In this document: piece by piece, positions 1 through 55,544 of the stretch
How positions within the stretch are numbered: the stretch's first letter is position 1
Layout: every line of letters starts with the position of its first letter
Origin: Macrostomum lignano
Taxonomy: Eukaryota
DNA: 64,000 nt
Direction: 5' to 3'
Assembly: GCA_002269645.1 (NCBI GenBank)
Contig: NIVC01003761.1
Location: forward strand, 14,191 to 78,190
Notes under the pieces: model-generated
Database searches by the model: none
The model's input: only the letters and a program-made list of their open reading frames with translations
Told to the model about the DNA's origin: nothing
Translations under genes and position numbers: made by a program

Positions 1-1457
1 CAGCTGGATAGAGGCCCGCATAAGATTGCGGGTGAGTCTCAGGAACGAGGGTATCTTGGCTGCTTCACGAAGGAGAACAGGGTAGATACCATCAGGTCCA
101 GGAGATTTGAAGGGTTTGAAGGTTCTGACCGCACGAGCGATTAGGTCTTCAGTGACAATGCCCGCCGCTAGGGTGGCTCCATCCATCGAATGGTTGGGCT
201 CCGGTCTAGCAGTAGGTACCCTCGGGAAGAATGTGCTAAGCATATGCTGAAGCACTTCTTCAGGGTCTTTAGTAAGAGAGCCATCATCTTTTTTGATCAT
301 GGCTAATTTGGACATTTTGTCCATTGTAAGGGCCTTGACAAGCCTAGAAGTAGGTCTGTCTTGATCCAATTCATTGCAGAATTGGCGCCACTTACATTCC
401 TTGGCCTTGCGCACTTCAGATTTGAAATTGCGGGAGGCTTGCCGGAAAAGCTCCATGTCCTCCGGGTTTCCGGTCTTCATGGCACGGCGATGAAGGCTTT
501 TGGCCTTCCGCCTGAGTTTCCCCAGCTCCGGGTTCCACCACGGCGCCGAGGTCTTGCCTTTGTAGGCGCGAGCAGGACAAGCCGCTTCGTAGGCTTCAAT
601 AATGCAACCTGTCAGCGTCTCAGCCATATGATCCACATCCTCGCAGGTCTCAATCGGACGTAAGTCCGTGAGTTCCTGCAGGTGCAGATCAAGGGCAGCC
701 TTGTAGGCCGCCCAATCAGTGTTGCGGATATTGCGTCTCCAAGTGATCGGAGACTGGGTTTTAGTGTCCGCGATGTTAAAGGCGATAAAGCAGTGGTCAG
801 ACAGGGAGGGCTCCTCAGACCAGACTCTCCACTCCTCAACTCTGTCAAAGAGTCTTGGGGTAACGAGTGTGGCGTCGAGGACCTCGTCCATCTGCCATTA
901 TTAAAGGTAGGAGTGCTGCCGCGGTTGCAGAGCATGAGGTTTGTGTTAGAGATGAGGGCCAGAAGCTCCTCTCCTCTAGTGTTGGTATCTTTGCTGCCCC
1001 AGTGCTTGTGGTGCGCGTTGAGGTCGCCCCCTAAGCACAGCTCAGCGTTCTGGGACTCGCAGTACTGCGCGAGGCGCAGTAAATTCTCAGGAGCAGGGTC
1101 TCTGTCGCCTGGGATATAAACCGAGGCAACAAGACACGTACGCGGAGAGAAATGATTAGATTGGATGACGCAAAGGTCTCCATCAGAGAGATCAGTCCTC
1201 AGCCAAGCCTGGAGATGGCTAGCAGCGAGGATAGCCGCTCTAGGGCGACTGTTCCCCGGGCCACACACATAAAAATCAGAGTAGCCAGAGGGAATGTTGG
1301 GCAACTTACTGTTGCGCATCCAGGGTTCCTGGATCAGGATGAGGCCTGGCCTGTACAGCTCAGCAATCTTCATCAGATTTACTGACGCAGATACGCAATG
1401 CTGTAAATTAATTTGCAGACAGAATGTCGCTCCTTTGGCAGCGTGGAGCTTAGTCAT
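1..1457 (-). CDS. LINE ORF2 (APE endonuclease-reverse transcriptase), partial, with one frameshift near 889
   Basis: ATG at 1457. Restoring one G in AGATGG(G)ACGAGGTC gives GRW-DEVLDATL and an open frame to position 1 ending in KSPGPDGIYPVLLREAAK. Confidence 0.88.
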
Positions 1458-1480
1458 ACTGTATTAAATGCAATTTCTGG

Positions 1481-3000
1481 CTAGAGCCCAGGGCCATCAA
1501 GGAGACTTGGACAACAGATCGTCCTCGTCCCAGGCCGCTGGGGCTTGACTGGGAGATGGGAGTTGGTCGACGTCCATGGCCTCCTCACCCCCACCGGCCC
1601 CCCAGCAGAGTCCTCAGGCTCCGATGACAGGATGGAGGAAGCTTCCTCACCTGCATCTTTACCTTCAGACCCCACCAGGGTGGCCGAGGAGAGCTCGGAT
1701 TCCGAAGACCCGGCCTCGTCCTCAACTCCTTCTCCGACTGGCAGGTTTGGTTCCCGGGGCTTGGCCGGAGCCGTTACCGCGGTCGCCGAACTGCTGCTAG
1801 CAGAGGGGCGAGATGCAGCTTCGGCTTTGGGATCGGCTTGCGCCTTTCCTTGGGCCTTAGACTGCGCCCCGCTCTTGCCGGAGATGCCGGGGTTGGCAGT
1901 AGCCTTCCCTTTGGCAGACTTTCCTCGGCGCATCTTGAGCTTGAGGGCACCCAGCTGGAAAGAGGATCCATTAGGGTACCGACTCGCCCAAGTGCTGGAA
2001 AGGCCGAGGACAATTGAGTTGCCCGTCTCCCCCTGCGGACTTTGCGGTGATACACCAGTCCACTAGCAGGGAGGTCGGGGTTCAGACGCAGTAGGACCCG
2101 GCGAATAACGTCTGGTCCAGCTGCGGTGCTCTTAGCAGGGACGAAAACCACATAGGGTATCGTCTTTGGACGCTGGCCCTCGCGAAGAAAAAGAGCTCCG
2201 CCAAGGTCAGCATCCAAGGAGACCGTCGGTAGCCGCTGGAGCAGCTGCCGAGCGTCCTCCTCGCTGCTAGGAGCAATAAGAACGAATGTGCTTCGCAGCA
2301 CCATCCGCTCAATGCCGATGGAGATTCCCTCCTCGACAGTCAGCTCAATCAGATAGGAGTCAACAGCACTCCACACTTTTTGAAGCTGATCAGTGGTCCA
2401 GTCCTGGTCGCGACCTTGGATGATCACTCCCGGGATTTTGGCCTTGGCCTTCGCCGCAAAGGTAGCTCCCGAAGGAACCTCCTTGTTGGCAGTGGCCATT
2501 TGTTGCGCCGTGGTTTCGGCCTCAGCAGCCGCAGCAGCATCTCCAGGGAGCGCCGCCGCTGAACTACCGGAGCTTCCACCGGCCGGCCCGTCTGGTTGCC
2601 TTGGGACGCCAGTCGCTTCAGCATCCATGGTGGACGCCGCCGCTTTGGCCCCCGCAGCTCCCTTCTTGGCCTGCCTTTTGGCGCGTTGTTTAGCGCGTTT
2701 GCGCTCAAGCCGAGCCCGCTGAGCTTCGTCGGATCTGCCAGATTTGGCCGGTCCTTTAGGCTCAGAGCTCGCGGTTCCCTTAGATCCACCAGCGGAGCTG
2801 GCAGGTCTTTGGGTATTTTGAGTTTGGTAGCTCTGGTCGGATCTGCCAGCAGAGCCAGCCGGTCCTTCCTTTGCCACAGTTGAATCAGTCGGTTGGGATC
2901 TGCCAGCAGGGCCGGCCGGTCCTTCGGACTGAGGTTGGGGTTTAGAAGGGTCCCCGTCCCTAGAAATAGCTTGTTTATCCATAGTCGGCTCGAAGGCCAT
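1481..3000 (-). CDS. LINE ORF1 (gag-like, DUF4780-like region), split by one frameshift in a G-run near 2029-2033
   Basis: ORFs 1774..3057 and 1481..1933 join if one G is restored in CGCAGGGGG(G)AGACG, giving ..VYHRKVRRG-ETGNSIVLGL..KLKMRRGK... First ATG is at 3000. The DUF4780 resemblance (VVFVP..IRRVLLRLNPDL) is from memory. Confidence 0.7.
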
Positions 3001-3519
3001 GATAGAAGGTTGGTGGGCTACCCTCAAAGGGGCGCGGTACCCACCCGGCCGCTCCACCTGACCGGGCAGTAGGCCAATAGCACCCTCAAGGCTGGCCCGA
3101 CACCAGGAGGGGGACCGCTTGCGACCGGACTACTCCCCGGCCTTCCAGCCCATCGGCACGGTCAACACCTTAGGCATTAGAGAGTACGTTGAGCAGTACC
3201 ACGGCCTGCAGGTTGGCGAGCCAGACCCGCATACCCAAATTCGGCCGAAGCCACTGGATAGGGTCGCCAGCGCCGGAGCCCAGTCTGTCCAGCAGCCCTA
3301 GGGACTGCCTTGAACACACGCGGGGACGAGTACCCTGGGTCGACTTGCGAGACAGCGTGGGGGGGGGTCTGCGGCTGCCAGAGGCAAATAGAGGGTGCAG
3401 ACCTCCCACCAGCCTTGACCTGCTGAAGATAGGGGCAGGCGTGAAGCATCGCAGACCTTAGCCCATGGGCCTAGTCTGTCTCATACTTCACTGGCATGCT
3501 GAATACGCCTTCGCGTGCC

Positions 3520-7881: not shown

Positions 7882-9829
7882 ATGAACGGCGCCAGCAAGA
7901 ACCAAAGCCGCAGAAGGCGAAGGCTTCTATGGACAATTCTAAGAGTTCTCGGTTGGTCCGTGCTGGGAGCTGTCTGGTCTTACTGGCTAGTCGGCTCGTT
8001 GAAGTTGATGCACCAGACTGCAGATCCTGGACCGTCAACAACAAGGGAGCCCGACGAAGCCCAAGGCTGGCGACTCTATCAGTTCAACGAGTCAGCAAGT
8101 CGGCTGATTAGCCCCGATCGCGATATCGGAGATCCCAGATCCCAAGCGTGTCGATTAGCCGCTGACGGTGACAATGACGTCATAATGCCTCAAGCCTCTG
8201 TAATAATCTGCTTTCACAACGAAGCCTGGAGTGTACTGCTCAGAACTGTACACTCGGTGCTCAACAGGTCGCCGAGAGAATCAGTTGCCGAGATCCTTCT
8301 AGTAGACGACGCTTCGACATTGGAACATCTGGGAAAGCCACTTGAAGTACAGCTTAAGAAAGAGAGGTTTTCAGTTACTGATTGTTTTCATTGAACGCCC
8401 TACTGTGTTCGTGCTTTTACACTTTGCAGTGCACGAAAATTATTGTCCTGCGATTTGAGCGCCTTTAGAACCAACCCTCATGCACTGAATTGCAGAAAGC
8501 CAGAGATTTATGTTAGGGTTTGGTTAGTTTAAGTCTATAAAGGTAAAGGTTTAGATACGGACTTAAGTACCTAGGTAGGTAGCGGCTTATGTTAGGGCTT
8601 AATGACAATAATAATTTATTACACCTGTCCTAATGGGCAGATGTGCAACCGACAGCTCAGCCGCGGCTGAATTGCGCGGCGCATCTGAACGCTGCGTACG
8701 GCTGTTCAGTCCAAGGACTGGGGGTCGCCACTTCAATCCCCATTTACCCCAGCTAATGCTGGCACCCATTTTACAGCTGGGTGAACTGAAGCAATGCAGA
8801 GTTAAGTGTCTTGCTCAAAGACACAAAATGTTCCGAATGGGTCGAGAATCGAACCCCCGACCTTTCAGTCGTGAGTCCGACGCTCTAACCACTACGAGAG
8901 TAGGCTACAACCCCTCGGGTTGGGCTTAGGGGTTAAATTAGGGTTGAAATTTCGGTTGGGGCGTAAAGCCAACAAGGGAGTCAACTGCTGAGTAGTGTCA
9001 TGTAAGTGTCTACAAGTCAAATAAATGCTCGGCTGCCAAATTGGGGCAATAAAATGTCACGGCACCTTGCAGGTACGGCGGTAGAGTTCGCGTAATGCGC
9101 ACCGACACTCGTCAAGGTCTCATCCGGGCTCGTCTTCTGGGCGCTCGCGCCGCCAAAGCCGCTGCTCTGGTGTTCCTGGACTCGCATTGCGAGTGCGCAC
9201 CTGGCTGGCTGTCGCCTCTGCTACGCCGACTCGCCGTCAAACCTCTCGCCGTGGTGACCCCAGTCATTGCCACCATCGACGACAAGACATTTGAGTTCAG
9301 GCCTCCGCCTCGAACGTTCTTTCTAATCGGCAGTTTCGACTGGACATTGCAGTTTGTCTGGCGACGGCTGAGACCGAGGCCACCGCTGAACAGCACCGAG
9401 CCGGTGGCCAGTCCCACCATGGCTGGCGGCCTGTTTGCCATCATGCGAGCCAATTTCTACCGCCTAGGCGGCTATGATCCCGGATTCAACGTCTGGGGCG
9501 CCGAGAATCTCGAGCTAAGCTTCAAAGCCTGGATGTGCGGCGGCAGAGTAGAGATCCACCCCTGCTCAATAGTTGGTCACGTGTTTCGGCACAAGTTTCC
9601 GTACAGCTTCGGCAATAACGGAGGCGATACGTTTCGTAGGAATACGGCTAGACTAGCTCGGGTGTGGATGGACGGCTACGCAAGGATGCACTACCGACAA
9701 GGCGGGCCTCCACCGGCTGATATTGGCGACGTGTCTGACAGAGTAGCCCTGCGGCAGCGGCTGCGCTGTCACAGTTTTGATTGGTACGTGCGGACAGTCT
9801 ATCGTCCGGAGCCGAGGAGTACGCGTTGA
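7882..9829 (+). CDS. GALNT: Polypeptide N-acetylgalactosaminyltransferase (GT27), 2 exons, about 413 aa, no ricin lectin domain seen
   Basis: Exons 7882-8366 and 9073-9829 (AG|GTTTTC ... TTGCAG|G, phase 2). N-terminal TM; motifs SVIICFHNEAWSVLLRTVHSV, LVDDAS, GLIRARLLGA, DSHCE, PTMAGGLFA, WGAENLE, GHVFR. Confidence 0.93.
8604..8916 (-). mobile_element. tRNA-derived SINE, family 1, copy 1 (in GALNT intron)
   Basis: On the - strand: A-box-like GTAGTGGTTAGAGC, B-box GGTTCGATTC, central TGTGTCTTTGAGCAAGACACTTAACTC..CAGCTGTAAAATGGG, (AAT)n-type tail. Homologous to 41475-41715 and 47773-48080. Confidence 0.88.
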
Positions 9830-10552
9830 TAAGGCAAACTAATGACTATATTGAAATCATACTTGATGCTTTGTAGCCCACAGAGATGAATAGTGAGGAC
9901 AAGGAAGACGGGAAAACTAGAAAGGCCAAAGAAAGGTCGGCCATTGGCAGACAGGCGATTCTCAAGTTTTTGGAGTTGTTCTTCAAGTCCTTTCAAGAGT
10001 ATTCGCATGATTGTGACTTGGTAAGATGATTACTTCACGTAGGCCCACGTTAAAGAGTAACATTTTAACACTCTTATACTGCTTAAGTAAGTTTGGCGTA
10101 CGATTATTGCTTTAATAGATTAAGTAAAGTACACAAAGTGAAGGAACTTTATGAAAAGTTTGTAATCAAATTATAAAAGTTTGAGGACTGCAAAAACTGG
10201 TTTCGGCATTTTGTATTTAATACATGTTAAAACAAAATTAGATAGTTTGAAATGCAACCAACTATAGTCATTGTGTGTCAGGTTTAGAATATTTAAAAAA
10301 AACTACAAATATCGTAGATTCTGCACTGCATTCAGAATATTCAATTTCTATGAAAAACTTTCAATTGAAAAAACCAATTCAACTATAAAAGATTGGAACA
10401 CATCAAAACATCTGCTGCTAAATATATACTTCAAAATTATGATACGAAATTATTGAAATGCACTTTACAGACGAGACTTAGGAAAACTCTTGATTTCAAA
10501 GCACAAAATTATTGGGCTTCAGAAGCCTTATCAGTACGTCAGCATCCATCTT

Positions 10553-11292
10553 TACACCAGCACCCACCCCATCAGTACACTAGCACCCACCCCATCAATA
10601 CACCAGCACCCACCCCATCAGTACACCAGCACCCACCATCAGTACACCAGCACCCACCCCATCAGTACACCAGCACCCACCATCAGTACACCAGCACCCA
10701 CCCCATCAGTACACCAGCACCCACCATCAGTACACCAGCACCCACCCCATCAGTACACCAGCACCCACCCCATCAGTACACCAGCACCCACCATCAGTAC
10801 ACCAGCACCCACCATCAGTACACCAGCACCACCATCAGTACAGCAGCACCCACCATCAGTACAGCAGCACCCACCATCAGTACACCAGCACCACCATCAG
10901 TACAGCAGCACCCACCATCAGTACAGCAGCACCCACCATCAGTACACCAGCACCCACCATCAGTACAGCAGCACCCACAATCAGTACAGCAGCACCCAAC
11001 CATCAGTACACCAGCACCACCATCAGTACACCAGCACCAACCATCAGTACAGCAGCACCCACAATCAGTACAGCAGCACCCAACCATCAGTACACCAGCA
11101 CCACCATCAGTACACCAGCACCAACCATCAGTACACCAGCACCCACCATCAGTACACCAGCACCAACCATCAGTACACCAGCACCCACCATCAGTACACC
11201 AGCACCCACCATCAGTACACCAGCACCCACCATCAGTACACCAGCACCCACCATCAGTACACCAGCACCCACCATCAGTACACCAGCACCCA
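10553..11292. repeat. About 21-bp minisatellite (CCATCAGTACACCAGCACCCA)n, about 35 units, overlapping the ESCO stop codon
   Basis: Directly visible. The reverse complement TGG GTG CTG GTG TAC TGA TGG equals the last codons and stop of the ESCO ORF. Confidence 0.97.
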
Positions 11293-12795
11293 CTCGTCCC
11301 CGCCGACATAGTCTCTAGCTAGCAGATAGCCGCTAGGACTGGGCGAGCAGAATGCCACGCGTTTTCTATCGGGCAGCAGGCCCGGACACAGAGCCTGGCG
11401 AGCCGCGTCCAGCAGGGCCGTCGCCACGCCAGTTCGTCGCTGATCTGAACGACACCAGATCTGGTAGATGCCGCATGAGGCTGGCACGAGAATCTCGGAT
11501 TGATAGTAAGCTAGTGGTGGACTTCTGGACTTTACAATTTGATCCAACTCTCCATTACAGTTTCCGACATTGATGTTTCCGTCGAAACTTCCGGTACCAG
11601 CATCTCCAATGCAACTTCCGGTACCAGCATCTCCAATGCAACTTCCGGTACCAGCATCTCCAATGCAACTTCCGGTGCCAGCATCTCCAATGCAACTTCC
11701 GGTACCAGCATCTCCAATGCAACTTCCGGTACCAGCATCTCCAATGCAACTTCCGGTACCAGCATCTCCAATGCAACTTCCGGTACCAGCATCTCCAATG
11801 CAACTTCCGGTACCAGCATCTCCAATGCAACTTCCGGTACCAGCATCTCCAATGCAACTTCCGGTGCCAGCATCTCCAATGCAACTTCCGGTACCAGCAT
11901 CTCCAATGCAACTTCCGGTACCAGCATCTCCAATGCAACTTCCGGTGCCAGCATCTCCAATGCAACTTCCGGTACCAGCATCTCCAATGCAACTTCCGGT
12001 ACCAGCATCTCCAATGCAACTTCCGGTACCAGCATCTCCAATGCAACTTCCGGTACCAGCATCTCCAATGCAACTTCCGGTACCAGCATCTCCAATGCAA
12101 CTTCCGGTACCAGCATCTCCAAAGCAACTTCCGGTACCAGCATCTCCAATGCAACTTCCGGTACCAGCATCTCCAATGCAATTTCCGGCGCCTAAATCCT
12201 TACGGAGTCCAGAATTACTTCCGGTGCTGATAGCATTTCTCGTTCCAGCGTTTTTATCGTTTCCGCCAGGCAGAGCAATCCGATAAGCTCGCCGAATCGG
12301 CTCAACCAAGCAGCAGCCGACGATACCGCAGCCCGGCCGGACAAACATCAGCGCCAGCCGGTCGGGAAGTCCGGCCTCTCGCCAGCAGGTCACGTCGTTG
12401 TCGTCCTCGAGGTCGCCGGCTCCGACGCCAGCCAGGTCGCGTCGCATCAGACGAACGGCGGCGAGCTCGGCGGCCGATGGACGACAATCATTGCCGATAC
12501 GAACAATTCTGTCGCCGTTGAAAAACGCTTTCACAATTGGTCGACGCTCGCGCCAAAGAGTTTTGTTATAATCGACGTAGGCGTCTAGTCGGTTGCTATG
12601 GAAACGAAGGTGTTTTTGCACGTCGGACGAGCGAGCGGCTGAGTAGATCATGCCGCACTGATTGCACGATTCGAGTCCCGGACTGCGGCTGCGACCTGTA
12701 GGACTCGAGCGGCAGGTTCGTTGCTCAAGCTGCATACGTCTTCGAGTCATCTTACCATGAGTAGATAAGGCCCGTTGAGATCGAGACGAGTGCAT
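11275..12795 (-). CDS. eco1: Eco1/ESCO cohesin acetyltransferase (C2H2 zinc finger plus GNAT domain); 506 aa unspliced or about 275 aa if 12203-11511 is an intron; 5' end uncertain
   Basis: CNQCGMIYS..DVQKHLRFH zinc finger; GCCLVEPI..AYR; PASCGIYQIW..RRTGVATALLD; VAFCSPSPSG..ARDY..VLVY* match the ESCO C-terminus. Confidence 0.92.
   Translation of the reverse strand: MHSSRSQRALSTHGKMTRRRMQLEQRTCRSSPTGRSRSPGLESCNQCGMIYSAARSSDVQKHLRFHSNRLDAYVDYNKTLWRERRPIVKAFFNGDRIVRIGNDCRPSAAELAAVRLMRRDLAGVGAGDLEDDNDVTCWREAGLPDRLALMFVRPGCGIVGCCLVEPIRRAYRIALPGGNDKNAGTRNAISTGSNSGLRKDLGAGNCIGDAGTGSCIGDAGTGSCFGDAGTGSCIGDAGTGSCIGDAGTGSCIGDAGTGSCIGDAGTGSCIGDAGTGSCIGDAGTGSCIGDAGTGSCIGDAGTGSCIGDAGTGSCIGDAGTGSCIGDAGTGSCIGDAGTGSCIGDAGTGSCIGDAGTGSCIGDAGTGSCIGDAGTGSCIGDAGTGSCIGDAGTGSCIGDAGTGSFDGNINVGNCNGELDQIVKSRSPPLAYYQSEILVPASCGIYQIWCRSDQRRTGVATALLDAARQALCPGLLPDRKRVAFCSPSPSGYLLARDYVGGDEWVLVY
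11585..12190. repeat. 27-bp minisatellite (CCGGTACCAGCATCTCCAATGCAACTT)n, about 22 units, inside the ESCO ORF
   Basis: Directly visible. Encodes GDAGTGSCI in the ESCO frame. Confidence 0.98.
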
Positions 12796-14767: not shown

Positions 14768-15887
14768 GCGCCAGCACCAGAGGCGCCAGCACCAGAGGCG
14801 CCAGCACCAGAGGCGCCAGCACCAGAGGCGCCAGCACCAGAGGCGCCAGCACCAGAGGCGCCAGCACCAGAGGCGCCAGCACCAGAGGCGCCAGCACCAG
14901 AGGCGCCAGCACCAGAGGCGCCAGCACCAGAGGCGCCAGCACCAGAGGCGCCAGCACCAGAGGCGCCAGCACCAGAGGCGCCAGCACCAGAGGCGCCAGC
15001 ACCAGAGGCGCCAGCACCAGAGGCGCCAGCACCAGAGGCGCCAGCACCAGAGGCGCCAGCACCAGAGGCGCCAGCACCAGAGGCGCCAGCACCAGAGGCG
15101 CCAGCACCAGAGGCGCCAGCACCAGAGGCGCCAGCACCAGAGGCGCCAGCACCAGAGGCGCCAGCACCAGAGGCGCCAGCACCAGAGGCGCCAGCACCAG
15201 AGGCGCCAGCACCAGAGGCGCCAGCACCAGAGGCGCCAGCACCAGAGGCGCCAGCACCAGAGGCGCCAGCACCAGAGGCGCCAGCACCAGAGGCGCCAGC
15301 ACCAGAGGCGCCAGCACCAGAGGCGCCAGCACCAGAGGCGCCAGCACCAGAGGCGCCAGCACCAGAGGCGCCAGCACCAGAGGCGCCAGCACCAGAGGCG
15401 CCAGCACCAGAGGCGCCAGCACCAGAGGCGCCAGCACCAGAGGCGCCAGCACCAGAGGCGCCAGCACCAGAGGCGCCAGCACCAGAGGCGCCAGCACCAG
15501 AGGCGCCAGCACCAGAGGCGCCAGCACCAGAGGCGCCAGCACCAGAGGCGCCAGCACCAGAGGCGCCAGCACCAGGGGCGCCAGCACCAGAGGCGCCAGC
15601 ACCAGAGGCGCCAGCACCAGAGGCGCCAGCACCAGAGGCGCCAGCACCAGAGGCGCCAGCACCAGAGGCGCCAGCACCAGAGGCGCCAGCACCAGAGGCG
15701 CCAGCACCAGAGGCGCCAGCACCAGAGGCGCCAGCACCAGAGGCGCCAGCACCAGAGGCGCCAGCACCAGAGGCGCCAGCACCAGAGGCGCCAGCACCAG
15801 AGGCGCCAGCATCAGAGGCGCCAGCATCAGAGGCGCCAGCACCAGAGGCGCCAGCACCAGAGGCGCCAGCACCAGAGGCGCCAGCAC
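14768..15887. repeat. 15-bp minisatellite A (GCGCCAGCACCAGAG)n, about 74 nearly perfect units
   Basis: Directly visible. Confidence 0.98.
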
Positions 15888-16253: not shown

Positions 16254-21087
<4,834 letters not shown>

Positions 21088-34400: not shown

Positions 34401-37400
34401 ACAGGTAGGGTAGCGGTGCTCAAACTGAATTACAGGTAGGGTAGCGGTGCTCAAACTGAATTACAGGTAGGGTAGCAGTGCTCAAACTGAATTACAGGTA
34501 GGGTAGCGGTGCTCAAACTGAATTACAGGTAGGGTAGCGGTGCTCAAATTGAATTACAGGTAGGGTAGCGGTGCTCAAACTGAATTACAGGTAGGGTAGC
34601 GGTGCTCAAACTGAATTACAGGTAGGGTAGCGGTGCTCAAATTGAATTACAGGTAGGGTAGCGGTGCTCAAATTGAATTACAGGTAGGGTAGCGGTGCTC
34701 AAATTGAATTACAGGTAGGGTAGCGGTGCTCAAACTGAATTACAGGTAGGGTAGCGGTGCTCAAATTGAATTACAGGTAGGGTAGCGGTGCTCAAATTGA
34801 ATTACAGGTAGGGTAGCGGTGCTCAAATTGAATTACAGGTAGGGTAGCGGTGCTCAAATTGAATTACAGGTAGGGTAGCGGTGCTCAAATTGAATTACAG
34901 GTAGGGTAGCGGTGCTCAAATTGAATTACAGGTAGGGTAGCGGTGCTCAAATTGAATTACAGGTAGGGTAGCGGTGCTCAAATTGAATTACAGGTAGGGT
35001 AGCGGTGCTCAAATTGAATTACAGGTAGGGTAGCGGTGCTCAAATTGAATTACAGGTAGGGTAGCGGTGCTCAAATTGAATTACAGGTAGGGTAGCGGTG
35101 CTCAAATTGAATTACAGTTAGGGTAGCGGTGCTCAAACTGAATTACAGGTAGGGTAGCGGTGCTCAAATTGAATTACAGGTAAGGTAGCGGTGCTCAAAT
35201 TGAATTACAGGTAGGGTAGCGGTGCTCAAATTGAATTACAGGTAGGGTAGCGGTGCTCAAATTGAATTACAGGTAGGGTAGCGGTGCTCAAATTGAATTA
35301 CAGGTAGGGTAGCGGTGCTCAAATTGAATTACAGGTAGGGTAGCGGTGCTCAAACTGAATTACAGGGAGGGTAGCGGTGCTCAAACTGAAGGACAGGTAG
35401 GGTAGCGGTGCTCAAACTGAATGGCAGGGAGGGAAGGGCTGCTCAAACTGAATGATCTCTATACGTACAGCTTCAGAGTACTTAGCAGCACAAAAGTACC
35501 CCCTAAGTGTTCGAATTTCACTTCATCGACACTGAAAAGTTTTTAAAGCTCTTGCTCTGGTTTGCGTTGCGACATAAAAAAACAATTTATTGGCTATTTT
35601 ATTCTCTGTTTTAAAGCAGCAATTAGTGGCTGGAGCACAGGCTACTTAAGCTTAAACCGCAAAGACGATTCAATTAACTGCGTTCGATCATAAAAGCTGA
35701 AATTATTGCTGCCAATTCCACGATTTCAGTTCCCACGCTGCACAATTTACCTGAGCGGCGAGCAGCGTTCGAACGGAGACGGAGTTCGCTACATCTGCAA
35801 CGGCGGCCGCTGGGTCACTCTGGCTAGCGTGGTCCAGTCTCAACGCCAGCCTCACCGCGGCTTCGGTTCCGCTACTGATAGGCAATCTCAAACTCCTGCC
35901 GCAGAGGACAAGACGATGATCAACTGCCCAACGGGTAGGGCTGCGGTTCTCTGAAAATATATTTGAAATTTTTTTTGTGGGTTCATATCGGTTATTTATG
36001 GTTTAGGGTAGCTTTTACGCGTAGCAGGGACGGTCGCGTCCTTGAAGGGCGCCATTTCGATTGAGAGGGGGCGCCATTTGGGTTGAGAGGGGGCGCCATT
36101 TGGGTTGAGAGGGGGCGCCATTTGGGTTGAGAGGGGTGCCGTTTGGGTTGAAAGGGGGCGCCGTTTGGGTTGAAAGGGGGCGCCGTTTGGGTTGAAAGGG
36201 GGCGCCATTTGGGTTGAGAGGGGCGCCATTTGGGTTGAGAGGGTCACCATTTGGGTTGAGAGGGGTGCCGTTTGGGTGGAGAGGGGGTGCCATTTTGATT
36301 GAGAGGGGCGCCATTTGGGTTGAGAGGGGGCGCCGTTTGGGTTGAGAGGGGGCACCGTTTGTGTTGAGATGGAGCACCATTAGCACCAGAGGCTTAAACA
36401 CCAGGGGCGCCAGCACCAGGGGCGCCAGCACCAGGGGCGCCAGCACCAGGGGCGCCAGCACCAGGGGCGCCAGCACCAGGGGCGCCAGCACCAGGGGCGC
36501 CAGCACCAGGGGCGCCAGCACCAGGGGCGCCAGCACCAGGGGCGCCAGCACCAGGGGCGCCAGCACCAGGGGCGCCAGCACCAGGGGCGCCAGCACCAGG
36601 GGCGCCAGCACCAGGGGCGCCAGCACCAGGGGCGCCAGCACCAGGGGCGCCAGCACCAGGGGCGCCAGCACCAGGGGCGCCAGCACCAGGGGCGCCAGCA
36701 CCAGGGGCGCCAGCACCAGGGGCGCCAGCACCAGGGGCGCCAGCACCAGGGGCGCCAGCACCAGGGGCGCCAGCACCAGGGGCGCCAGCACCAGGGGCGC
36801 CAGCACCAGGGGCGCCAGCACCAGGGGCGCCAGCACCAGGGGCGCCAGCACCAGGGGCGCCAGCACCAGGGGCGCCAGCACCAGGGGCGCCAGCACCAGG
36901 GGCGCCAGCACCAGGGGCGCCAGCACCAGGGGCGCCAGCACCAGGGGCGCCAGCACCAGGGGCGCCAGCACCAGGGGCGCCAGCACCAGGGGCGCCAGCA
37001 CCAGGGGTGCAACTAGCACTCCAGAATCACCTCCATCTGAATCCCGCAGGCTGGACAGCCAAGTCAGGCCTCTCCTGCGTTCGCCTATTCAAGGCGCGGC
37101 TCAGCTTCACTGCAGCGACCGCCGAGTGCGCCAAGTACGGAGCCCGCCTCTTGGAGCTGGGCAGCGCAGCTGATGCGCGCTGGATTCGCAAGAATCTGCG
37201 TACCAGAAAGCGCTATTGGATTGGTGAGCGCTGGATTGGTTTCGCTTTGCAAGAATTTGTCGCTATTCTTTAATGGGTGATTTGCTAGAACCCACACGCT
37301 AGAACCCACACGCTAGAATTCCCACACGCAAGAACCCACACACAAGAACCCACACGCAAGAACCCACACGCTAGAATCCACATGCTAGAACCCACTCGCT

Positions 37401-44039: not shown

Positions 44040-45413
44040 TTAAAGCTTGTTTAACGCCTGCATCAGAGCCATCTTCACAATGTTTGCAGCCGTTTTCTTC
44101 TGCGTCTTCGCTATCAATCGGGCCACCATTTTTAGCAGCACGTTTGACAGCAACTGGCTTAACTCGAGGGAGATTCTGTCCTGCTTCACTTTCCTGCCAG
44201 CCACAGCTTTGCAGCTTGTCGGCATAGCTTGCAGCCTTGATTTCAACTGTTTTACACCCAAGCTTTCCTGCCTGTGTAGCTTGTTTGATGGCACTTCTTC
44301 ATTATCCACCTCTGCTTCTTCATTATCTATCTCTGCTTCTTCATTATCCACCTCTGCTTCTTCATTATCTATCTCTGCTTCTCCATTACCCACCTCTGCT
44401 TCTTCATTATCCACCTCTGCTTCTTCATTATCTATCTCTGCTTCTCCATTACCCACCTCTGCTTCTTCATTATCCACCTCTGCTTCTTCATTATCCACCT
44501 CTGCTTCTTCATTATCCACCTCTGCTTCTTCATTATCCACCTCTGCTTCTTCATTATCCACCTCTGCTTCTTCATTATCCACCTCTGCTTCTTCATTATC
44601 CACCTCTGCTTCTTCATTATCCACCTCTGCTTCTTCATTGTCTGTTACGTTTTCCTCGCCGCTATCCTTTTCGTCCGCTATTTCATCATCATTGTCAGTT
44701 ATAAAGCTTTCGTTTTCTGTGTCATAATCTCCGTTTTCTGGGCCATCAGGATCCTCAATTTCCGTAACTTCTTCTTCATTCTCCGTTCCATCCTCGTAAT
44801 CTGTCCTTTCTTCGTCGTATTCTGTTCCATCCTCTTCATTCTCTGTCCCATCCTCTTCATTCTCTGTTTCTTCCTCTTCATTTTCTGTTTCTTCCTCTTC
44901 AAAATCTGTTTCGTCCTCTTCATAATCTGTTTCTTCCTCTTCATAATCTGTTTCGTTCTCTTCATAATCTGTTCCCTCATCTGCATTCTCGGTTTCTTCC
45001 TCCAGTTCTTCAGGACCCTGCTCAGTGCCAGTTTCAGCGTCGTCAGTGTTCAAATGCATCCTCACAGCACCATTGTTGTCCAAACTAAACTGATCGTCAT
45101 CATTTTCTGTTGTTTTGTCACTATTGTTAGGAGAAAATGGCTCTTCCTCGTCAGCAGCATAATCTGATGCATCGCTCACGATATTGTTGTCAGAATGAGC
45201 CGCGTCTCTGATCAAAACTTCGCCAAGTTTGTCGACCTCCTCCGTGCGCACGCCTTCATTGTTGCTCTCGAAAGTCACGCTCTCGACCTGCTCATTGCTC
45301 ATGGCTTCCGCTCTAGCGCACACACCCAGCTCATCATTGTTGCCGAATCTTGCACTTTGCGTCAGGCTGCACACTTCTCGATGATCAGGATCCTTCAATA
45401 TCTGCTCAGCCAT
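44040..45413 (-). CDS. Highly acidic hypothetical protein, 457 aa, with 7-aa repeats (EVDNEEA) and a basic helical C-terminus
   Basis: ATG-initiated single ORF. About 240 aa of unique N-terminal and about 80 aa of unique C-terminal sequence flank an in-frame 21-bp repeat (about 44290-44640). Confidence 0.7.
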   Translation of the reverse strand: MAEQILKDPDHREVCSLTQSARFGNNDELGVCARAEAMSNEQVESVTFESNNEGVRTEEVDKLGEVLIRDAAHSDNNIVSDASDYAADEEEPFSPNNSDKTTENDDDQFSLDNNGAVRMHLNTDDAETGTEQGPEELEEETENADEGTDYEENETDYEEEETDYEEDETDFEEEETENEEEETENEEDGTENEEDGTEYDEERTDYEDGTENEEEVTEIEDPDGPENGDYDTENESFITDNDDEIADEKDSGEENVTDNEEAEVDNEEAEVDNEEAEVDNEEAEVDNEEAEVDNEEAEVDNEEAEVDNEEAEVDNEEAEVGNGEAEIDNEEAEVDNEEAEVGNGEAEIDNEEAEVDNEEAEIDNEEAEVDNEEVPSNKLHRQESLGVKQLKSRLQAMPTSCKAVAGRKVKQDRISLELSQLLSNVLLKMVARLIAKTQKKTAANIVKMALMQALNKL

Positions 45414-49200: not shown

Positions 49201-52200
49201 CCTACTGCACAGTGTCGCTGTCTTCATGAGCGCAAACTAGCGTTCGACGTGCCGCGATTGACCTGCCAGGACACTCGCAACCGGTCGGTCAGCTTATCGT
49301 TGTGCCAAACAATCTACGAAAAAAGTACTCGATTGTACACCGCCGCCCCCTGTGAATTCGACGCTGTCTGCTCTCAGCCAAGCGAGTGGGTAGTTGGCAA
49401 TTGGACATTGTGCAGCGTGGACAGCCCCCAGTACCAAAATCGGGAGGTGGTCTGCGCCACTCGAGTACCAAACGGTGTTTACTTGATCATGCACGACTCA
49501 ATGTGCGTCAAGGCTGCCAGACCCGTGGCCAACAGATACTGCGCTCGCTGGGCTGCCGAGAAAAACTTCAAGGTGAGAACATTGAGATTTGTTACTGTGT
49601 CCTGAGATTACTGCGGGAGAGGCTTGTACTAGATTGAGGATATTGCGAGTACAAGAGCGAGGGGTGTACAGAACCGAGAATAGTACAAGAGTGAGGAGAA
49701 TACATGATTGAGAATAGTACAAGAGTGAGGAGAATACATGATTGAGAATAGTACAAGAGTGAGGAGAATACATGATTGAGAATAGTACAAGAGTGAGAAG
49801 AATACATGATGGAGAATAGTACAAGAGTGAGGAGAATACATGATTGAGAATAGTACAAGAGTGAGGAGAATACATGATGGAGAATACGAGTAGTACAAGA
49901 GTGAGTAGAATACATGATGGAGAATAGTACAAGAGTGAGGAGAATACATGATGGAGAATACGAGTAGTACAAGATTGAGTAGAATACATGATTGAGAATA
50001 GTACAAGAGTGAGGAGAATACATGATGGAGAATACGAGTAGTACAAGAGTGAGTAGAATACATGATGGAGAATAGTACAAGAGTGAGGAGAATACATGAT
50101 GGAGAATAGTACAAAAGTGAGGAGAATACATGATTGAGAATAGTACAAGAGTGAGGAGAATACATGATTGAGAATACGAGTAGTACAAGAGTGAGAAGAA
50201 TACATGATGGAGAATAGTACAAGAGTGGGGAGAATACATGATGGAGAATAGTACAAGAGTGAGGAGAATACATGATGGAGAATAGTACAAGAGTGAGAAG
50301 AATACATGATGGAGAATAGTACAAGAGTGGGGAGAATACATGTACATGATTGAGAATAGTACAGGAGAGAGGAGAATACATGATGGAGAATAGTACAAGA
50401 GTGAGGAGAATACATGATTGAGAATAGTACAAGAGTGAGGAGAATACATGATGGAGAATACGAGTAGTACAAGAGTGAGTAGAATACATGATGGAGAATA
50501 GTACAAGAGTGAGGAGAATACATGATGGAGAATACGAGTAGTACAAGATTGAGTAGAATACATGATTGAGAATAGTACAAGAGTGAGGAGAATACATGAT
50601 GGAGAATACGAGTAGTACAAGAGTGAGTAGAATACATGATGGAGAATAGTACAAGAGTGAGGAGAATACATGATGGAGAATAGTACAAAAGTGAGGAGAA
50701 TACATGATTGAGAATAGTACAAGAGTGAGGAGAATACATGATTGAGAATACGAGTAGTACAAGAGTGAGAAGAATACATGATGGAGAATAGTACAAGAGT
50801 GGGGAGAATACATGATGGAGAATAGTACAAGAGTGAGGAGAATACATGATGGAGAATAGTACAAAAGTGAGGAGAATACATGATTGAGAATAGTACAAGA
50901 GTGAGGAGAATACATGATTGAGAATACGAGTAGTACAAGAGTGAGAAGAATACATGATGGAGAATAGTACAAGAGTGGGGAGAATACATGATGGAGAATA
51001 GTACAAGAGTGAGGAGAATACATGATGGAGAATAGTACAAGAGTGAGAAGAATACATGATGGAGAATAGTACAAGAGTGGGGAGAATACATGATGGAGAA
51101 TAGTACAAGAGTGAGGAGAATACATGATGGAGAATAGTACAAGAGTGAGGAGAATACATGATGGAGAATAGTACAAGAGTGAGGAGAATACATGATAGCG
51201 AATAGTACAAGAGTGGGGAGAATACATGATGGAGAATAGTACAAGAGTGAGGAGAATACATGATGGAGAATAGTACAAGAGTGAGGAGAATACATGATGG
51301 AGAATAGTACAACAGTGAGGAGAATACATGATGGAGAATAGTACAGGAGTGAGGAGAATACATGATGGAGAATAGTACAAAAGTGAGGAGAATACATGAT
51401 GGAGAATAGTACAAAAGTGAGGAGAATACATGATGGAGAATAGTACAGGAGTGAGGAGAATACATGATGGAGAATAGTACAAAAGTGAGGAGAATACATG
51501 ATGGAGAATAGTACAAGAGTGAGGAGAATACATGATTGAGAATAGTACAAGAGTGAGGAGAATACATGATTGAGAATAGTACAAGAGTGAGAAGAATACA
51601 TGATGGAGAATAGTACAAGAGTGAGGAGAATACATGATTGAGAATAGTACAAGAGTGAGGAGAATACATGATGGAGAATACGAGTAGTACAAGAGTGAGT
51701 AGAATACATGATGGAGAATAGTACAAGAGTGAGGAGAATACATGATGGAGAATACGAGTAGTACAAGATTGAGTAGAATACATGATTGAGAATAGTACAA
51801 GAGTGAGGAGAATACATGATGGAGAATACGAGTAGTACAAGAGTGAGTAGAATACATGATGGAGAATAGTACAAGAGTGAGGAGAATACATGATGGAGAA
51901 TAGTACAAAAGTGAGGAGAATACATGATTGAGAATAGTACAAGAGTGAGGAGAATACATGATTGAGAATACGAGTAGTACAAGAGTGAGAAGAATACATG
52001 ATGGAGAATAGTACAAGAGTGGGAGAATACATGATGGAGAATAGTACAAGAGTGAGGAGAATACATGATGGAGAATAGTACAAGAGTGAGAAGAATACAT
52101 GATGGAGAATAGTACAAGAGTGGGGAGAATACATGTACATGATTGAGAATAGTACAGGAGAGAGGAGAATACATGATGGAGAATAGTACAAGAGTGAGGA

Positions 52201-55200
52201 GAATACATGATTGAGAATAGTACAAGAGTGAGGAGAATACATGATGGAGAATACGAGTAGTACAAGAGTGAGTAGAATACATGATGGAGAATAGTACAAG
52301 AGTGAGGAGAATACATGATGGAGAATACGAGTAGTACAAGATGAGTAGAATACATGATTGAGAATAGTACAAGAGTGAGGAGAATACATGATGGAGAATA
52401 CGAGTAGTACAAGAGTGAGTAGAATACATGATGGAGAATAGTACAAGAGTGAGGAGAATACATGATGGAGAATAGTACAAAAGTGAGGAGAATACATGAT
52501 TGAGAATAGTACAAGAGTGAGGAGAATACATGATTGAGAATACGAGTAGTACAAGAGTGAGAAGAATACATGATGGAGAATAGTACAAGAGTGGGGAGAA
52601 TACATGATGGAGAATAGTACAAGAGTGAGGAGAATACATGATGGAGAATAGTACAAAAGTGAGGAGAATACATGATTGAGAATAGTACAAGAGTGAGGAG
52701 AATACATGATTGAGAATACGAGTAGTACAAGAGTGAGAAGAATACATGATGGAGAATAGTACAAGAGTGGGAGAATACATGATGGAGAATAGTACAAGAG
52801 TGAGGAGAATACATGATGGAGAATAGTACAAGAGTGAGAAGAATACATGATGGAGAATAGTACAAGAGTGGGGAGAATACATGATGGAGAATAGTACAAG
52901 AGTGAGGAGAATACATGATGGAGAATAGTACAAGAGTGAGGAGAATACATGATGGAGAATAGTACAAGAGTGAGGAGAATACATGATAGCGAATAGTACA
53001 AGAGTGGGAGAATACATGATGGAGAATAGTACAAGAGTGAGGAGAATACATGATGGAGAATAGTACAAGAGTGAGGAGAATACATGATGGAGAATAGTAC
53101 AACAGTGAGGAGAATACATGATGGAGAATAGTACAGGAGTGAGGAGAATACATGATGGAGAATAGTACAAAAGTGAGGAGAATACATGATGGAGAATAGT
53201 ACAAAAGTGAGGAGAATACATGATGGAGAATAGTACAGGAGTGAGGAGAATACATGATGGAGAATAGTACAAAAGTGAGGAGAATACATGATGGAGAATA
53301 GTACAAGAGTGAGGAGAATACATGATGAGAATAGTACAAGAGTGAGGAGAATACATGATTGAGAATAGTACAAGAGTGAGAAGAATACATGATGGAGAAT
53401 AGTACAAGAGTGAGGAGAATACATGATTGAGAATAGTACAAGAGTGAGGAGAATACATGATGGAGAATACGAGTAGTACAAGAGTGAGTAGAATACATGA
53501 TGGAGAATAGTACAAGAGTGAGGAGAATACATGATGGAGAATACGAGTAGTACAAGATGAGTAGAATACATGATTGAGAATAGTACAAGAGTGAGGAGAA
53601 TACATGATGGAGAATACGAGTAGTACAAGAGTGAGTAGAATACATGATGGAGAATAGTACAAGAGTGAGGAGAATACATGATGGAGAATAGTACAAAGTG
53701 AGGAGAATACATGATGAGAATAGTACAAGAGTGAGGAGAATACATGATTGAGAATACGAGTAGTACAAGAGTGAGAAGAATACATGATGGAGAATAGTAC
53801 AAGAGTGGGGAGAATACATGATGGAGAATAGTACAAGAGTGAGGAGAATACATGATGGAGAATAGTACAAGAGTGAGAAGAATACATGATGGAGAATAGT
53901 ACAATAGTGGGGAGAATACATGATGGAGAATAGTACAAGAGTGAGGAGAATACATGATGGAGAATAGTACAAGAGTGAGGAGAATACATGATAGCGAATA
54001 GTACAAGAGTGAGGAGAATACATGATGGAGAATAGTACAGGAGTGAGGAGAATACATGATGGAGAATAGTACAACAGTGAGGAGAATACATGATGGAGAA
54101 TAGTACAACAGTGAGGAGAATACATGATGGAGAATAGTACAACAGTGAGGAGAATACATGATGGAGAATAGTACAACAGTGAGGAGAATACATGATGGAG
54201 AATAGTACAACAGTGAGGAGAATACATGATGGAGAATAGTACAAAAGTGAGGAGAATACATGATGGAGAATAGTACAGGAGTGAGGAGAATACATGATGG
54301 AGAATAGTACAACAGTGAGGAGAATACATGATGGAGAATAGTACAGGAGTGAGGAGAATACATGATGGAGAATAGTACAAGAGTGAGAAGAATACATGAT
54401 GGAGAATAGTACAAGAGTGAGGAGAATACATGATGGAGAATAGTACAAGAGTGAGGAGAATACATGATTGAGAATAGTACAAGAGTGAGAAGAATACATG
54501 ATGGAGAATAGTACAAGAGTGAGGAGAATACATGATGGAGAATAGTACAAGAGTGAGGAGAATACATGATTGAGAATAGTACAAGAGTGAGGAGAATACA
54601 TGATGGAGAATAGTACAAGAGTGAGAAGAATACATGATGGAGAATAGTACAAGAGTGAGGAGAATACATGATGGAGAATAGTACAAGAGTGAGAAGAATA
54701 CATGATGGAGAATAGTACAAGAGTGAGGAGAATACATGATGGAGAATAGTACAAGAGTGAGGAGAATACATGATGGAGAATAGTACAATAGTGAGGAGAA
54801 TACATGATTGAGAATAGTACAAGAGTGAGGAGAATACATGATGGAGAATAGTACAAGAGTGAGGAGAATACATGATTGAGAATAGTACAAGAGTGAGGAG
54901 AATACATGATGGAGAATAGTACAATAGTGAGGAGAATACATGATTGAGAATAGTACAAGAGTGAGGAGAATACATGATTGAGAATAGTACAAGAGTGAGG
55001 AGAATACATGATTGAGAATAGTACAAGAGTGAGGAGAATACATGATGGAGAATAGTACAAGAGTGGGGAGAATACATGATGGAGAATAGTACAAGAGTGA
55101 GGAGAATACATGATGAGAATAGTACAAGAGTGAGGAGAATACATGATGGAGAATAGTACAAGAGTGAGGAGAATACATGATGGAGAATGAGTACAAGAGT

Positions 55201-55544
55201 GGGTGAGAATACATGATGAGAATAGTACAAGAGTGAGGAGAATACATGATTGAGAATAGTACAAGAGTGAGGAGAATACATGACATAGTACAAGGAGTAG
55301 TTACTAGTAGCAGGAAATCGCATCAGTTTTATTTATTACAGAAATTCTAACCAAGACGCCCTAACCACACCCTATTCAGTGCAAGTGCTCAGACTACATA
55401 GCCAGACGGATCGTGATTTGCATGCGCGGCCGCAGGGGAAGCAGGAAGCCGGTACCGGAGTTCAACTGTAACTGGCACGACAAGCCCCTTGCAATGCGAT
55501 ACTGCACCGAGTCGGAGAGGTCCGAATGCAGGAGGCGTCGTTGA
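46214..55544 (+). CDS. Small secreted protein with degenerate ADAMTS-type thrombospondin-1 repeats, 7 exons, about 325 aa
   Basis: Exons 46214-46264, 46338-46457, 47700-47753, 48651-48742, 48843-48978, 49213-49572, 55380-55544; all GT-AG with consistent phases. Signal peptide MLPIISRLLLVSILTILLSIAPAHC; FDWTPGSFGPC, EWVVGNWTLCS..QNREVVC..C..RPVANRYC, RRIVIC..VPEFNC..KPLAMRYC. Confidence 0.72.
47773..48080 (-). mobile_element. tRNA-derived SINE, family 1, copy 3 (TSP1-gene intron 3)
   Basis: Full-length similarity to copy 1, including the (AAT)n tail and the GCGGTTAGAGCGTCGGACTCACGAC head. Confidence 0.88.
48071..48583. repeat. 18-bp minisatellite (TAGGCTACAACCCCTCCC)n, about 28 units, continuous with the SINE 5' end
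   Basis: Directly visible. Confidence 0.98.
49676..55285. repeat. 34-bp satellite (GAGAATAGTACAAGAGTGAG-GAGAATACATGATG)n, about 160 units, 5.6 kb, with higher-order structure (TSP1-gene intron 6)
   Basis: Directly visible. Rare variants recur about 1.79 kb apart (CATGTACAT at 50339 and 52132; GATAGCGAAT near 51195 and 52986). Confidence 0.98.

Follow-up and report, generated by a model that had tools for sequence, protein, structure and literature searches.

Human SLC6A3 (DAT1) carries a 40-bp variable number tandem repeat (VNTR) in its 3'UTR, between the stop codon and the poly(A) site, where it leaves the protein unchanged. To our knowledge, the units of such 3'UTR VNTRs are not copies of the terminal codons and stop codon of the gene that carries them. 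Taylor and Breden (Genetics 155:1313, cited in PMC3599147) are said to have proposed, in 2000, that minisatellites are born by slipped-strand mispairing at non-contiguous short repeats. Microhomology-mediated tandem duplication has been described by Dan et al. (bioRxiv 10.1101/2020.03.03.972455). Here, we describe a 21-bp minisatellite at the end of an ESCO/Eco1-family gene in a 64,000-nucleotide stretch of Macrostomum lignano contig NIVC01003761.1 (the window). As in the slipped-strand and microhomology models of minisatellite birth, a unique segment of tens of bases would have been duplicated in tandem and seeded an expansion that grew in place and left decayed copies at its edge. The locus differs from these models in that its seed can be identified as conserved coding sequence with a stop codon, and in that the flanking microhomology that could have seeded the presumed first duplication is short (TGG, at most 3 bp). 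Like the SLC6A3/DAT1 repeat, the array leaves the protein unchanged, but it begins within coding sequence, with zero spacing. The PRDM9 zinc-finger array (PMC3890296) is likewise a minisatellite with higher-order and variant units that lies at the 3' end of an open reading frame (ORF); there the units are translated and under selection, whereas only the first unit is translated here. With other M. lignano minisatellites (period 10-34 bp), which differ in copy number between duplicate loci, the array shares tens of copies and high purity. Unlike the other arrays of the window, it is entered by a long open frame that stops in the first unit (513 codons; the only such case among the 21 window arrays tested), and it lies outside a dispersed family of arrays with a GGCGCC core.

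TRF reported the array with 35.0 copies, 93% matches and a score of 1205 (Table 1), and the unit TGGGTGCTGGTGTACTGATGG was matched 35 times on the minus strand, which is the sense strand, with up to 3 mismatches allowed, compared to no matches in 100 shuffles. Unit 1 (11292..11272, minus) comprises the W-V-L-V-Y codons, the TGA stop (11277..11275) and a further TGG, so that the minus strand reads GAC TAT GTC GGC GGG GAC GAG TGG GTG CTG GTG TAC TGA TGG TGG GTG CTG across the junction of gene and array. The edge at the gene is sharp (11292/11293), with a single base 5' of the first TGG keeping the period. Units are 20-23 bp long and the canonical 21-mer occurs without mismatch in only 18 of the 35. 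From the gene outwards they map as AAAAABAB CDEF CDEG AGH AGH AA IIAIAIAI J K and then two decayed copies, giving 11 unit types with interspersed variants; units 1-5 all repeat the coding unit exactly, and the 84-bp higher-order repeat contains 20- and 22-bp units as well as a GCTGCTG variant. Decay is limited to the gene-distal edge, where TATTGA, GCTAGTG and TAAAGA precede ATGCTGACGTACTGATAAGG, which abuts the unique flank CTTCTGAAGCCCAATAAT. G and T make up 46% and 34% of the sense strand (80% G+T). Head-to-tail units within the range of about 10-100 bp, tens of copies, variants and higher-order structure are all present, and the internal structure is that of an ordinary minisatellite grown by slippage or unequal exchange. 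TRF, unit matching and the minus-strand reading bear out the preliminary description, in which the array was taken to consist of the ESCO gene's own last codons and stop codon. Its figure of about 35 units following the gene end is right as a number, but includes the unit that overlaps the gene, and there is one more decayed copy (10526-10545), with which the array spans 10526-11293. The ORF was also said to be untouched, and it is indeed intact over 506 codons with its stop in the first unit.

The array is not a translated minisatellite, as each unit holds a TGA and unit 1 alone is read. The first nine TGA codons share the frame of the ORF, and the later ones fall out of register because of the 20-, 22- and 23-bp units; were the first stop read through, only about 7 residues would be added, with W-W-V-L-V-Y preceding the next stop. 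A +1-frame ORF of 164 codons (10815-11309, minus), whose ATG lies 32 nt 5' of the ESCO stop, crosses the array and reads (GCWCTDG)n, then (GAGVLMV)n, and two plus-strand frames are open over the entire array. Such open frames are most likely side effects of the unit having a stop in one frame only.

Table 1. Features of the ESCO gene, its 3' minisatellite and the adjoining sequence (positions in the window).
Feature	Position	Strand	Basis
Intronless 506-codon ESCO/Eco1-family ORF, ending DYVGGDEWVLVY-TGA	11275..12795	-	ORF list, Pfam
ESCO zinc finger, residues 38-67, SPGLESCNQCGMIYSAARSSDVQKHLRFHS	12595..12684	-	Pfam zf-C2H2_3
Second array, in the ESCO ORF: 27 bp x 22.3 copies, 98% matches, in frame, CIGDAGTGS x22	11586..12188	-	TRF, ORF list
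Acetyltransf_13, residues 437-503	11287..11487	-	Pfam; overlaps array unit 1
Coding part of unit 1: TGG GTG CTG GTG TAC TGA = W V L V Y stop	11275..11292	-	
21-bp minisatellite, 35 units	10546..11293	-	TRF, unit matching
Gene-proximal block, 127 nt, perfect 21-bp periodicity	11166..11292	-	
Four-unit (84-bp) higher-order repeat x2, units 9-16	10954..11121	-	96-nt exact run, lag 84
Three-unit (62-bp) higher-order repeat x2, units 17-22	10830..10953	-	90-nt exact run, lag 62
44-bp higher-order repeat, 23-bp (extra GG) alternating with 21-bp, units 25-32	10610..10787	-	127-nt exact run, lag 44
Decayed distal edge; units 33-35 with single/double substitutions, then ATGCTGACGTACTGATAAGG and CTTCTGAAGCCCAATAAT	10526..10609	-	
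Candidate poly(A)-signal hexamers (ATTAAA), first downstream of the stop	10221..10216, 10116..10111	-	
Last large exon-like ORF of a convergent polypeptide GalNAc-transferase gene	9095..9829	+	ORF list, Pfam

The host gene is a putative ESCO/Eco1 cohesin acetyltransferase paralogue. Both Pfam domains score above their cut-offs (zf-C2H2_3, 29.2 bits against 27; Acetyltransf_13, 67.8 bits against 22.8), and since the latter is matched over profile positions 1-67 of 69, the domain extends to the end of the protein. Matches by phmmer included the solved human ESCO1 (5t53/4mxe), ESCO2 (6sp0) and Xenopus XEco2 (5n1u). With an intact ORF and intact domains, the gene is predicted to be functional. The second, 27-bp array separates EPIRRAYRI from CGIYQIW, two motifs of the acetyltransferase region, and has about 22 copies here compared to about 9 in the gene model from the ML2 assembly. 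By eye, the codons on either side resemble decayed units, with DLGAGN preceding the array and FDGNINVGN and CNGE following it, and all three minus-strand frames are open through it. We considered whether it occupies the intron position of the M. lignano ESCO paralogue described below, and it does not: the intron precedes SGIVGCC, and the array follows EPIRRAYRI.

Word-indexed protein searches with the ESCO protein gave no matches, whereas an exhaustive HMMER search with its C-terminal 105 residues did find relatives, 604 in number, the best being UniRef A0A1I8FW91 (M. lignano, 3136 aa). This ML2 model is collinear with the minus strand of the window from 21087 to 394 at 93-100% identity, which identifies the window as M. 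lignano DNA from either a different assembly or a different copy, and its ESCO part is about 97% identical to the window's ORF; the C-terminal 68 residues are the same in both, and the N-terminal 200 differ at about 6 positions. It is a chimera of a coiled-coil gene, a translated minisatellite, ESCO, antisense GalNAc-transferase and sodium-channel-like exons, and retrotransposon ORFs, in which the ESCO exon stops at 11293, the edge of the array, and then jumps to an antisense GalNAc-transferase exon. Exact-protein look-ups with the full ORF, the ML2 model, a neighbouring 557-aa ORF, a guessed product of a short-read contig and seven window ORFs retrieved no second copy of the locus, and a look-up of the GalNAc-transferase neighbour gave only UniRef entries without DNA on record. 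No clean gene model of the ESCO ORF was found among deposited models, and the GenBank annotation of M. lignano seems to lack the gene. This annotation dropped transcripts that overlapped repeat annotations (PMC5730564), which plausibly explains why a clean model is lacking. A stop codon within a repeat fits both annotation problems, namely the missing GenBank model and the fusion of the ML2 model into a 3136-residue chimera. That the true stop codon lies in a repeat, of the sort masked or filtered out by pipelines, is a practical warning for annotation.

The array contains neither AATAAA nor ATTAAA; the nearest ATTAAA downstream is 325 nt past its distal edge, which makes it probable that the array belongs to a 3'UTR, one that would be about 1.06 kb long. 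Between the distal edge of the array and the end of the convergent GalNAc-transferase ORF lie 717 bp. Elsewhere in the window, retrotransposon-like ORFs (612-3057, minus) are 98-100% identical to the endonuclease/reverse-transcriptase-like part of the ML2 model, and a 457-codon ORF for a very acidic protein (44040-45413, minus) holds two in-frame 21-bp arrays (44294-44639 and 44768-45002) of EAEVDNE-type heptads that look like translated minisatellites.

Simple and tandem repeats account for 15% of the M. lignano genome (PMC5730564), and tandem arrays for 28% of the window, in which 19 arrays are at least 200 bp long; the window also holds a 5.6-kb array of a 34-bp unit (49648-55283). At two duplicate loci that carry the ESCO paralogue (L001 and L002), the same arrays recur at equivalent positions, and every one of them differs in copy number between the two loci, for example 24.5 against 17.5 and 35 against 22. 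The intron of the paralogue is filled by a 20-bp minisatellite (L001 6547-7110 and its L002 equivalent; 24.5 and 17.5 copies, respectively) that begins 6 nt past the splice donor (CAG|GTGAGT TGTAACACC). Arrays thus run up to constrained sequence, as at this splice donor. Some minisatellites are dispersed: GGCGCC is present in 6 of the 32 array consensus units examined, far above chance, and arrays with this core lie at 14768-15887, 36399-37007, 18949-19461 and 36047-36381 of the window and at 11498-12176 and 13180-13440 of L001. The first two of these, 15-bp arrays 21 kb apart, have 14 of 15 bases in common in register, and other members share CTTGGCGCC or GGGGCGCCA. Neither GGCGCC nor the CTTGGCGCC core was found in the ESCO unit, which places its array outside this family. 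An 8-mer common to the ESCO unit and two 15-bp arrays (CCAGCACC) was discarded as a sign of kinship, being at about chance level over all array pairs.

To place the unit in time, we compared the gene end with its homologues, using an alignment of the 146 true ESCO proteins among the 150 matches listed by the HMMER search. In 135 of these 146, x-L-V-Y occupies the position of the window's V-L-V-Y, with L kept in 119, V in 110 and Y in 129 of the 135; the commonest forms among the matches listed are FLVY, PLVY and, third, VLVY. The spacing Y-x-G-x-x-x-x-V-L-V-Y is common to the window's ORF, Allomyces (a chytrid-like fungus), Sycon (a sponge) and several others. Within M. lignano, an ESCO paralogue (PAA58562.1 and PAA59226.1, at L001 and L002) of 286 aa, 52% identical and more canonical, ends GAC AGG CCA TTG GTA TAC TGA, that is, with L-V-Y-TGA in single copy; unique AT-rich sequence lies beyond its stop, and after about 110 bp an unrelated array of 23-bp units starts. 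Outside the array, the unit TGGGTGCTGGTGTACTGATGG itself was found neither in the 64-kb window nor in 26.7 kb of sequence from two other M. lignano loci. Given the motif across homologues and the single-copy end of the paralogue, sequence comparison dates the coding content of the unit to before the array, as the preliminary description had claimed, and the end of the ESCO gene would once have been in single copy too. The same description held xLVY-stop to be the conserved C-terminus of ESCO proteins. The x-L-V-Y motif is indeed kept, but among the matches listed only 15 of the 135 homologues (11%) end exactly at Y, and 91 end within 3 residues of it.

It is very probable, in our judgement, that a 21-bp segment of the ESCO gene end was duplicated in place and grew to about 35 copies without change to the protein, as a neutral by-product that probably lies in the 3'UTR. 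The segment duplicated in tandem would have comprised the last five codons, the TGA and the first three bases of the 3'UTR, and the duplicate would then have been amplified, likely by slippage during replication or by unequal exchange; part of the later growth would have come from duplicated blocks of two, three and four units. As every copy carries the stop, translation would still terminate at the first, the protein would stay the same and the array would be invisible to selection on the protein, persisting as a by-product of the genome's very high rate of minisatellite formation. We infer both the duplication mechanism and the neutrality. Amplification in place from coding sequence had been put forward earlier on what was called direct evidence; the amplification is supported, but by evidence that is inferential and not direct. 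Likewise, the first copy does remain the gene end, as expected of an array said to extend 3', but this points to no directional mechanism: a tandem duplication that includes the stop cannot alter the protein, and for that reason the array appears to extend 3'. Hairpin-driven slippage was considered and rejected, since the folding energy of either strand is only 0 to -0.6 kcal/mol, a range that shuffled sequences also reach.

Perfect units next to the gene and a decayed distal edge are not expected under strict neutrality; this pattern may fit either a young array or polar turnover. One could imagine that the coding unit, pinned by purifying selection, acts as a master copy from which the array is renewed in a polar manner, and that copy number in the 3'UTR tunes ESCO expression, a combination that we regard as very unlikely. 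If it were true, the locus would serve as a natural reporter of how fast and in which direction minisatellites turn over, and would be a functional VNTR. Selection might also act on the array itself, as a GU-rich docking site for small RNAs or RNA-binding proteins that tunes ESCO expression through its copy number, or as a set of back-up stops. The 80% G+T sense strand, the nine in-frame tandem stops, the convergent gene end 717 bp away and, if the first ATTAAA is used, the position in the 3'UTR could all be read in this way, but 28% of the window consists of arrays comparable in size and purity that bear no relation to genes, and the paralogue does without such an array. Moreover, the array has no secondary structure, Rfam matched no family in it or anywhere else in the window, and unit variants and frame shifts pile up freely past unit 9. 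A selected element thus seems quite unlikely. If instead the host gene were a decaying duplicate, the array would have arisen in unconstrained sequence and would say nothing about what is tolerated at the end of a functional gene. That the species has a second, more canonical ESCO of 286 aa, that 22 copies of a 9-residue repeat lie within the acetyltransferase region and that no clean model has been deposited would agree with decay. The intact 506-codon ORF with both domains above their cut-offs, and the 68 C-terminal residues identical in ML2 next to about 6 differences in the N-terminal 200, make it unlikely, and the missing NCBI model is plausibly due to the removal of repeat-overlapping transcripts (PMC5730564).

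Two further explanations concern the direction of events and the assembly. An older 3' minisatellite could have invaded or converted the gene and replaced its C-terminus with W-V-L-V-Y-stop, and since units 1-5 are the same as the coding unit, exchange of sequence between unit 1 and the array is plausible. We nevertheless find this extremely improbable, because V-L-V-Y is the family motif at its exact alignment position in distant eukaryotes and in the paralogue of the same species, a random unit would encode an in-frame L-V-Y-stop about once in 100,000 (a rough estimate), and the 26.7 kb from two other loci, like the remainder of the 64-kb window, gave no match to the unit. It is just as hard to credit that the array, or its length, was created by mis-assembly of repetitive reads. 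The perfect 127-nt periodicity at the gene end might raise that suspicion, as might the differing copy numbers of other arrays between assemblies or copies, but the non-trivial variant map, the higher-order repeats and the decayed edge are unlike collapse or expansion, and the ESCO exon of the independent ML2 assembly stops exactly at the array edge (11293).

In-place duplication of the gene end followed by minisatellite growth, the reading that we prefer, is ordinary as a mechanism, and it is the seed that is unusually informative: the origin of this minisatellite is unusually clear, as its seed is recognisable as conserved coding sequence with a stop codon. In a genome so prone to arrays, this may reflect a filter by selection, in which coding seeds without a stop would lengthen the protein, and seeds that include one would be silent and survive.
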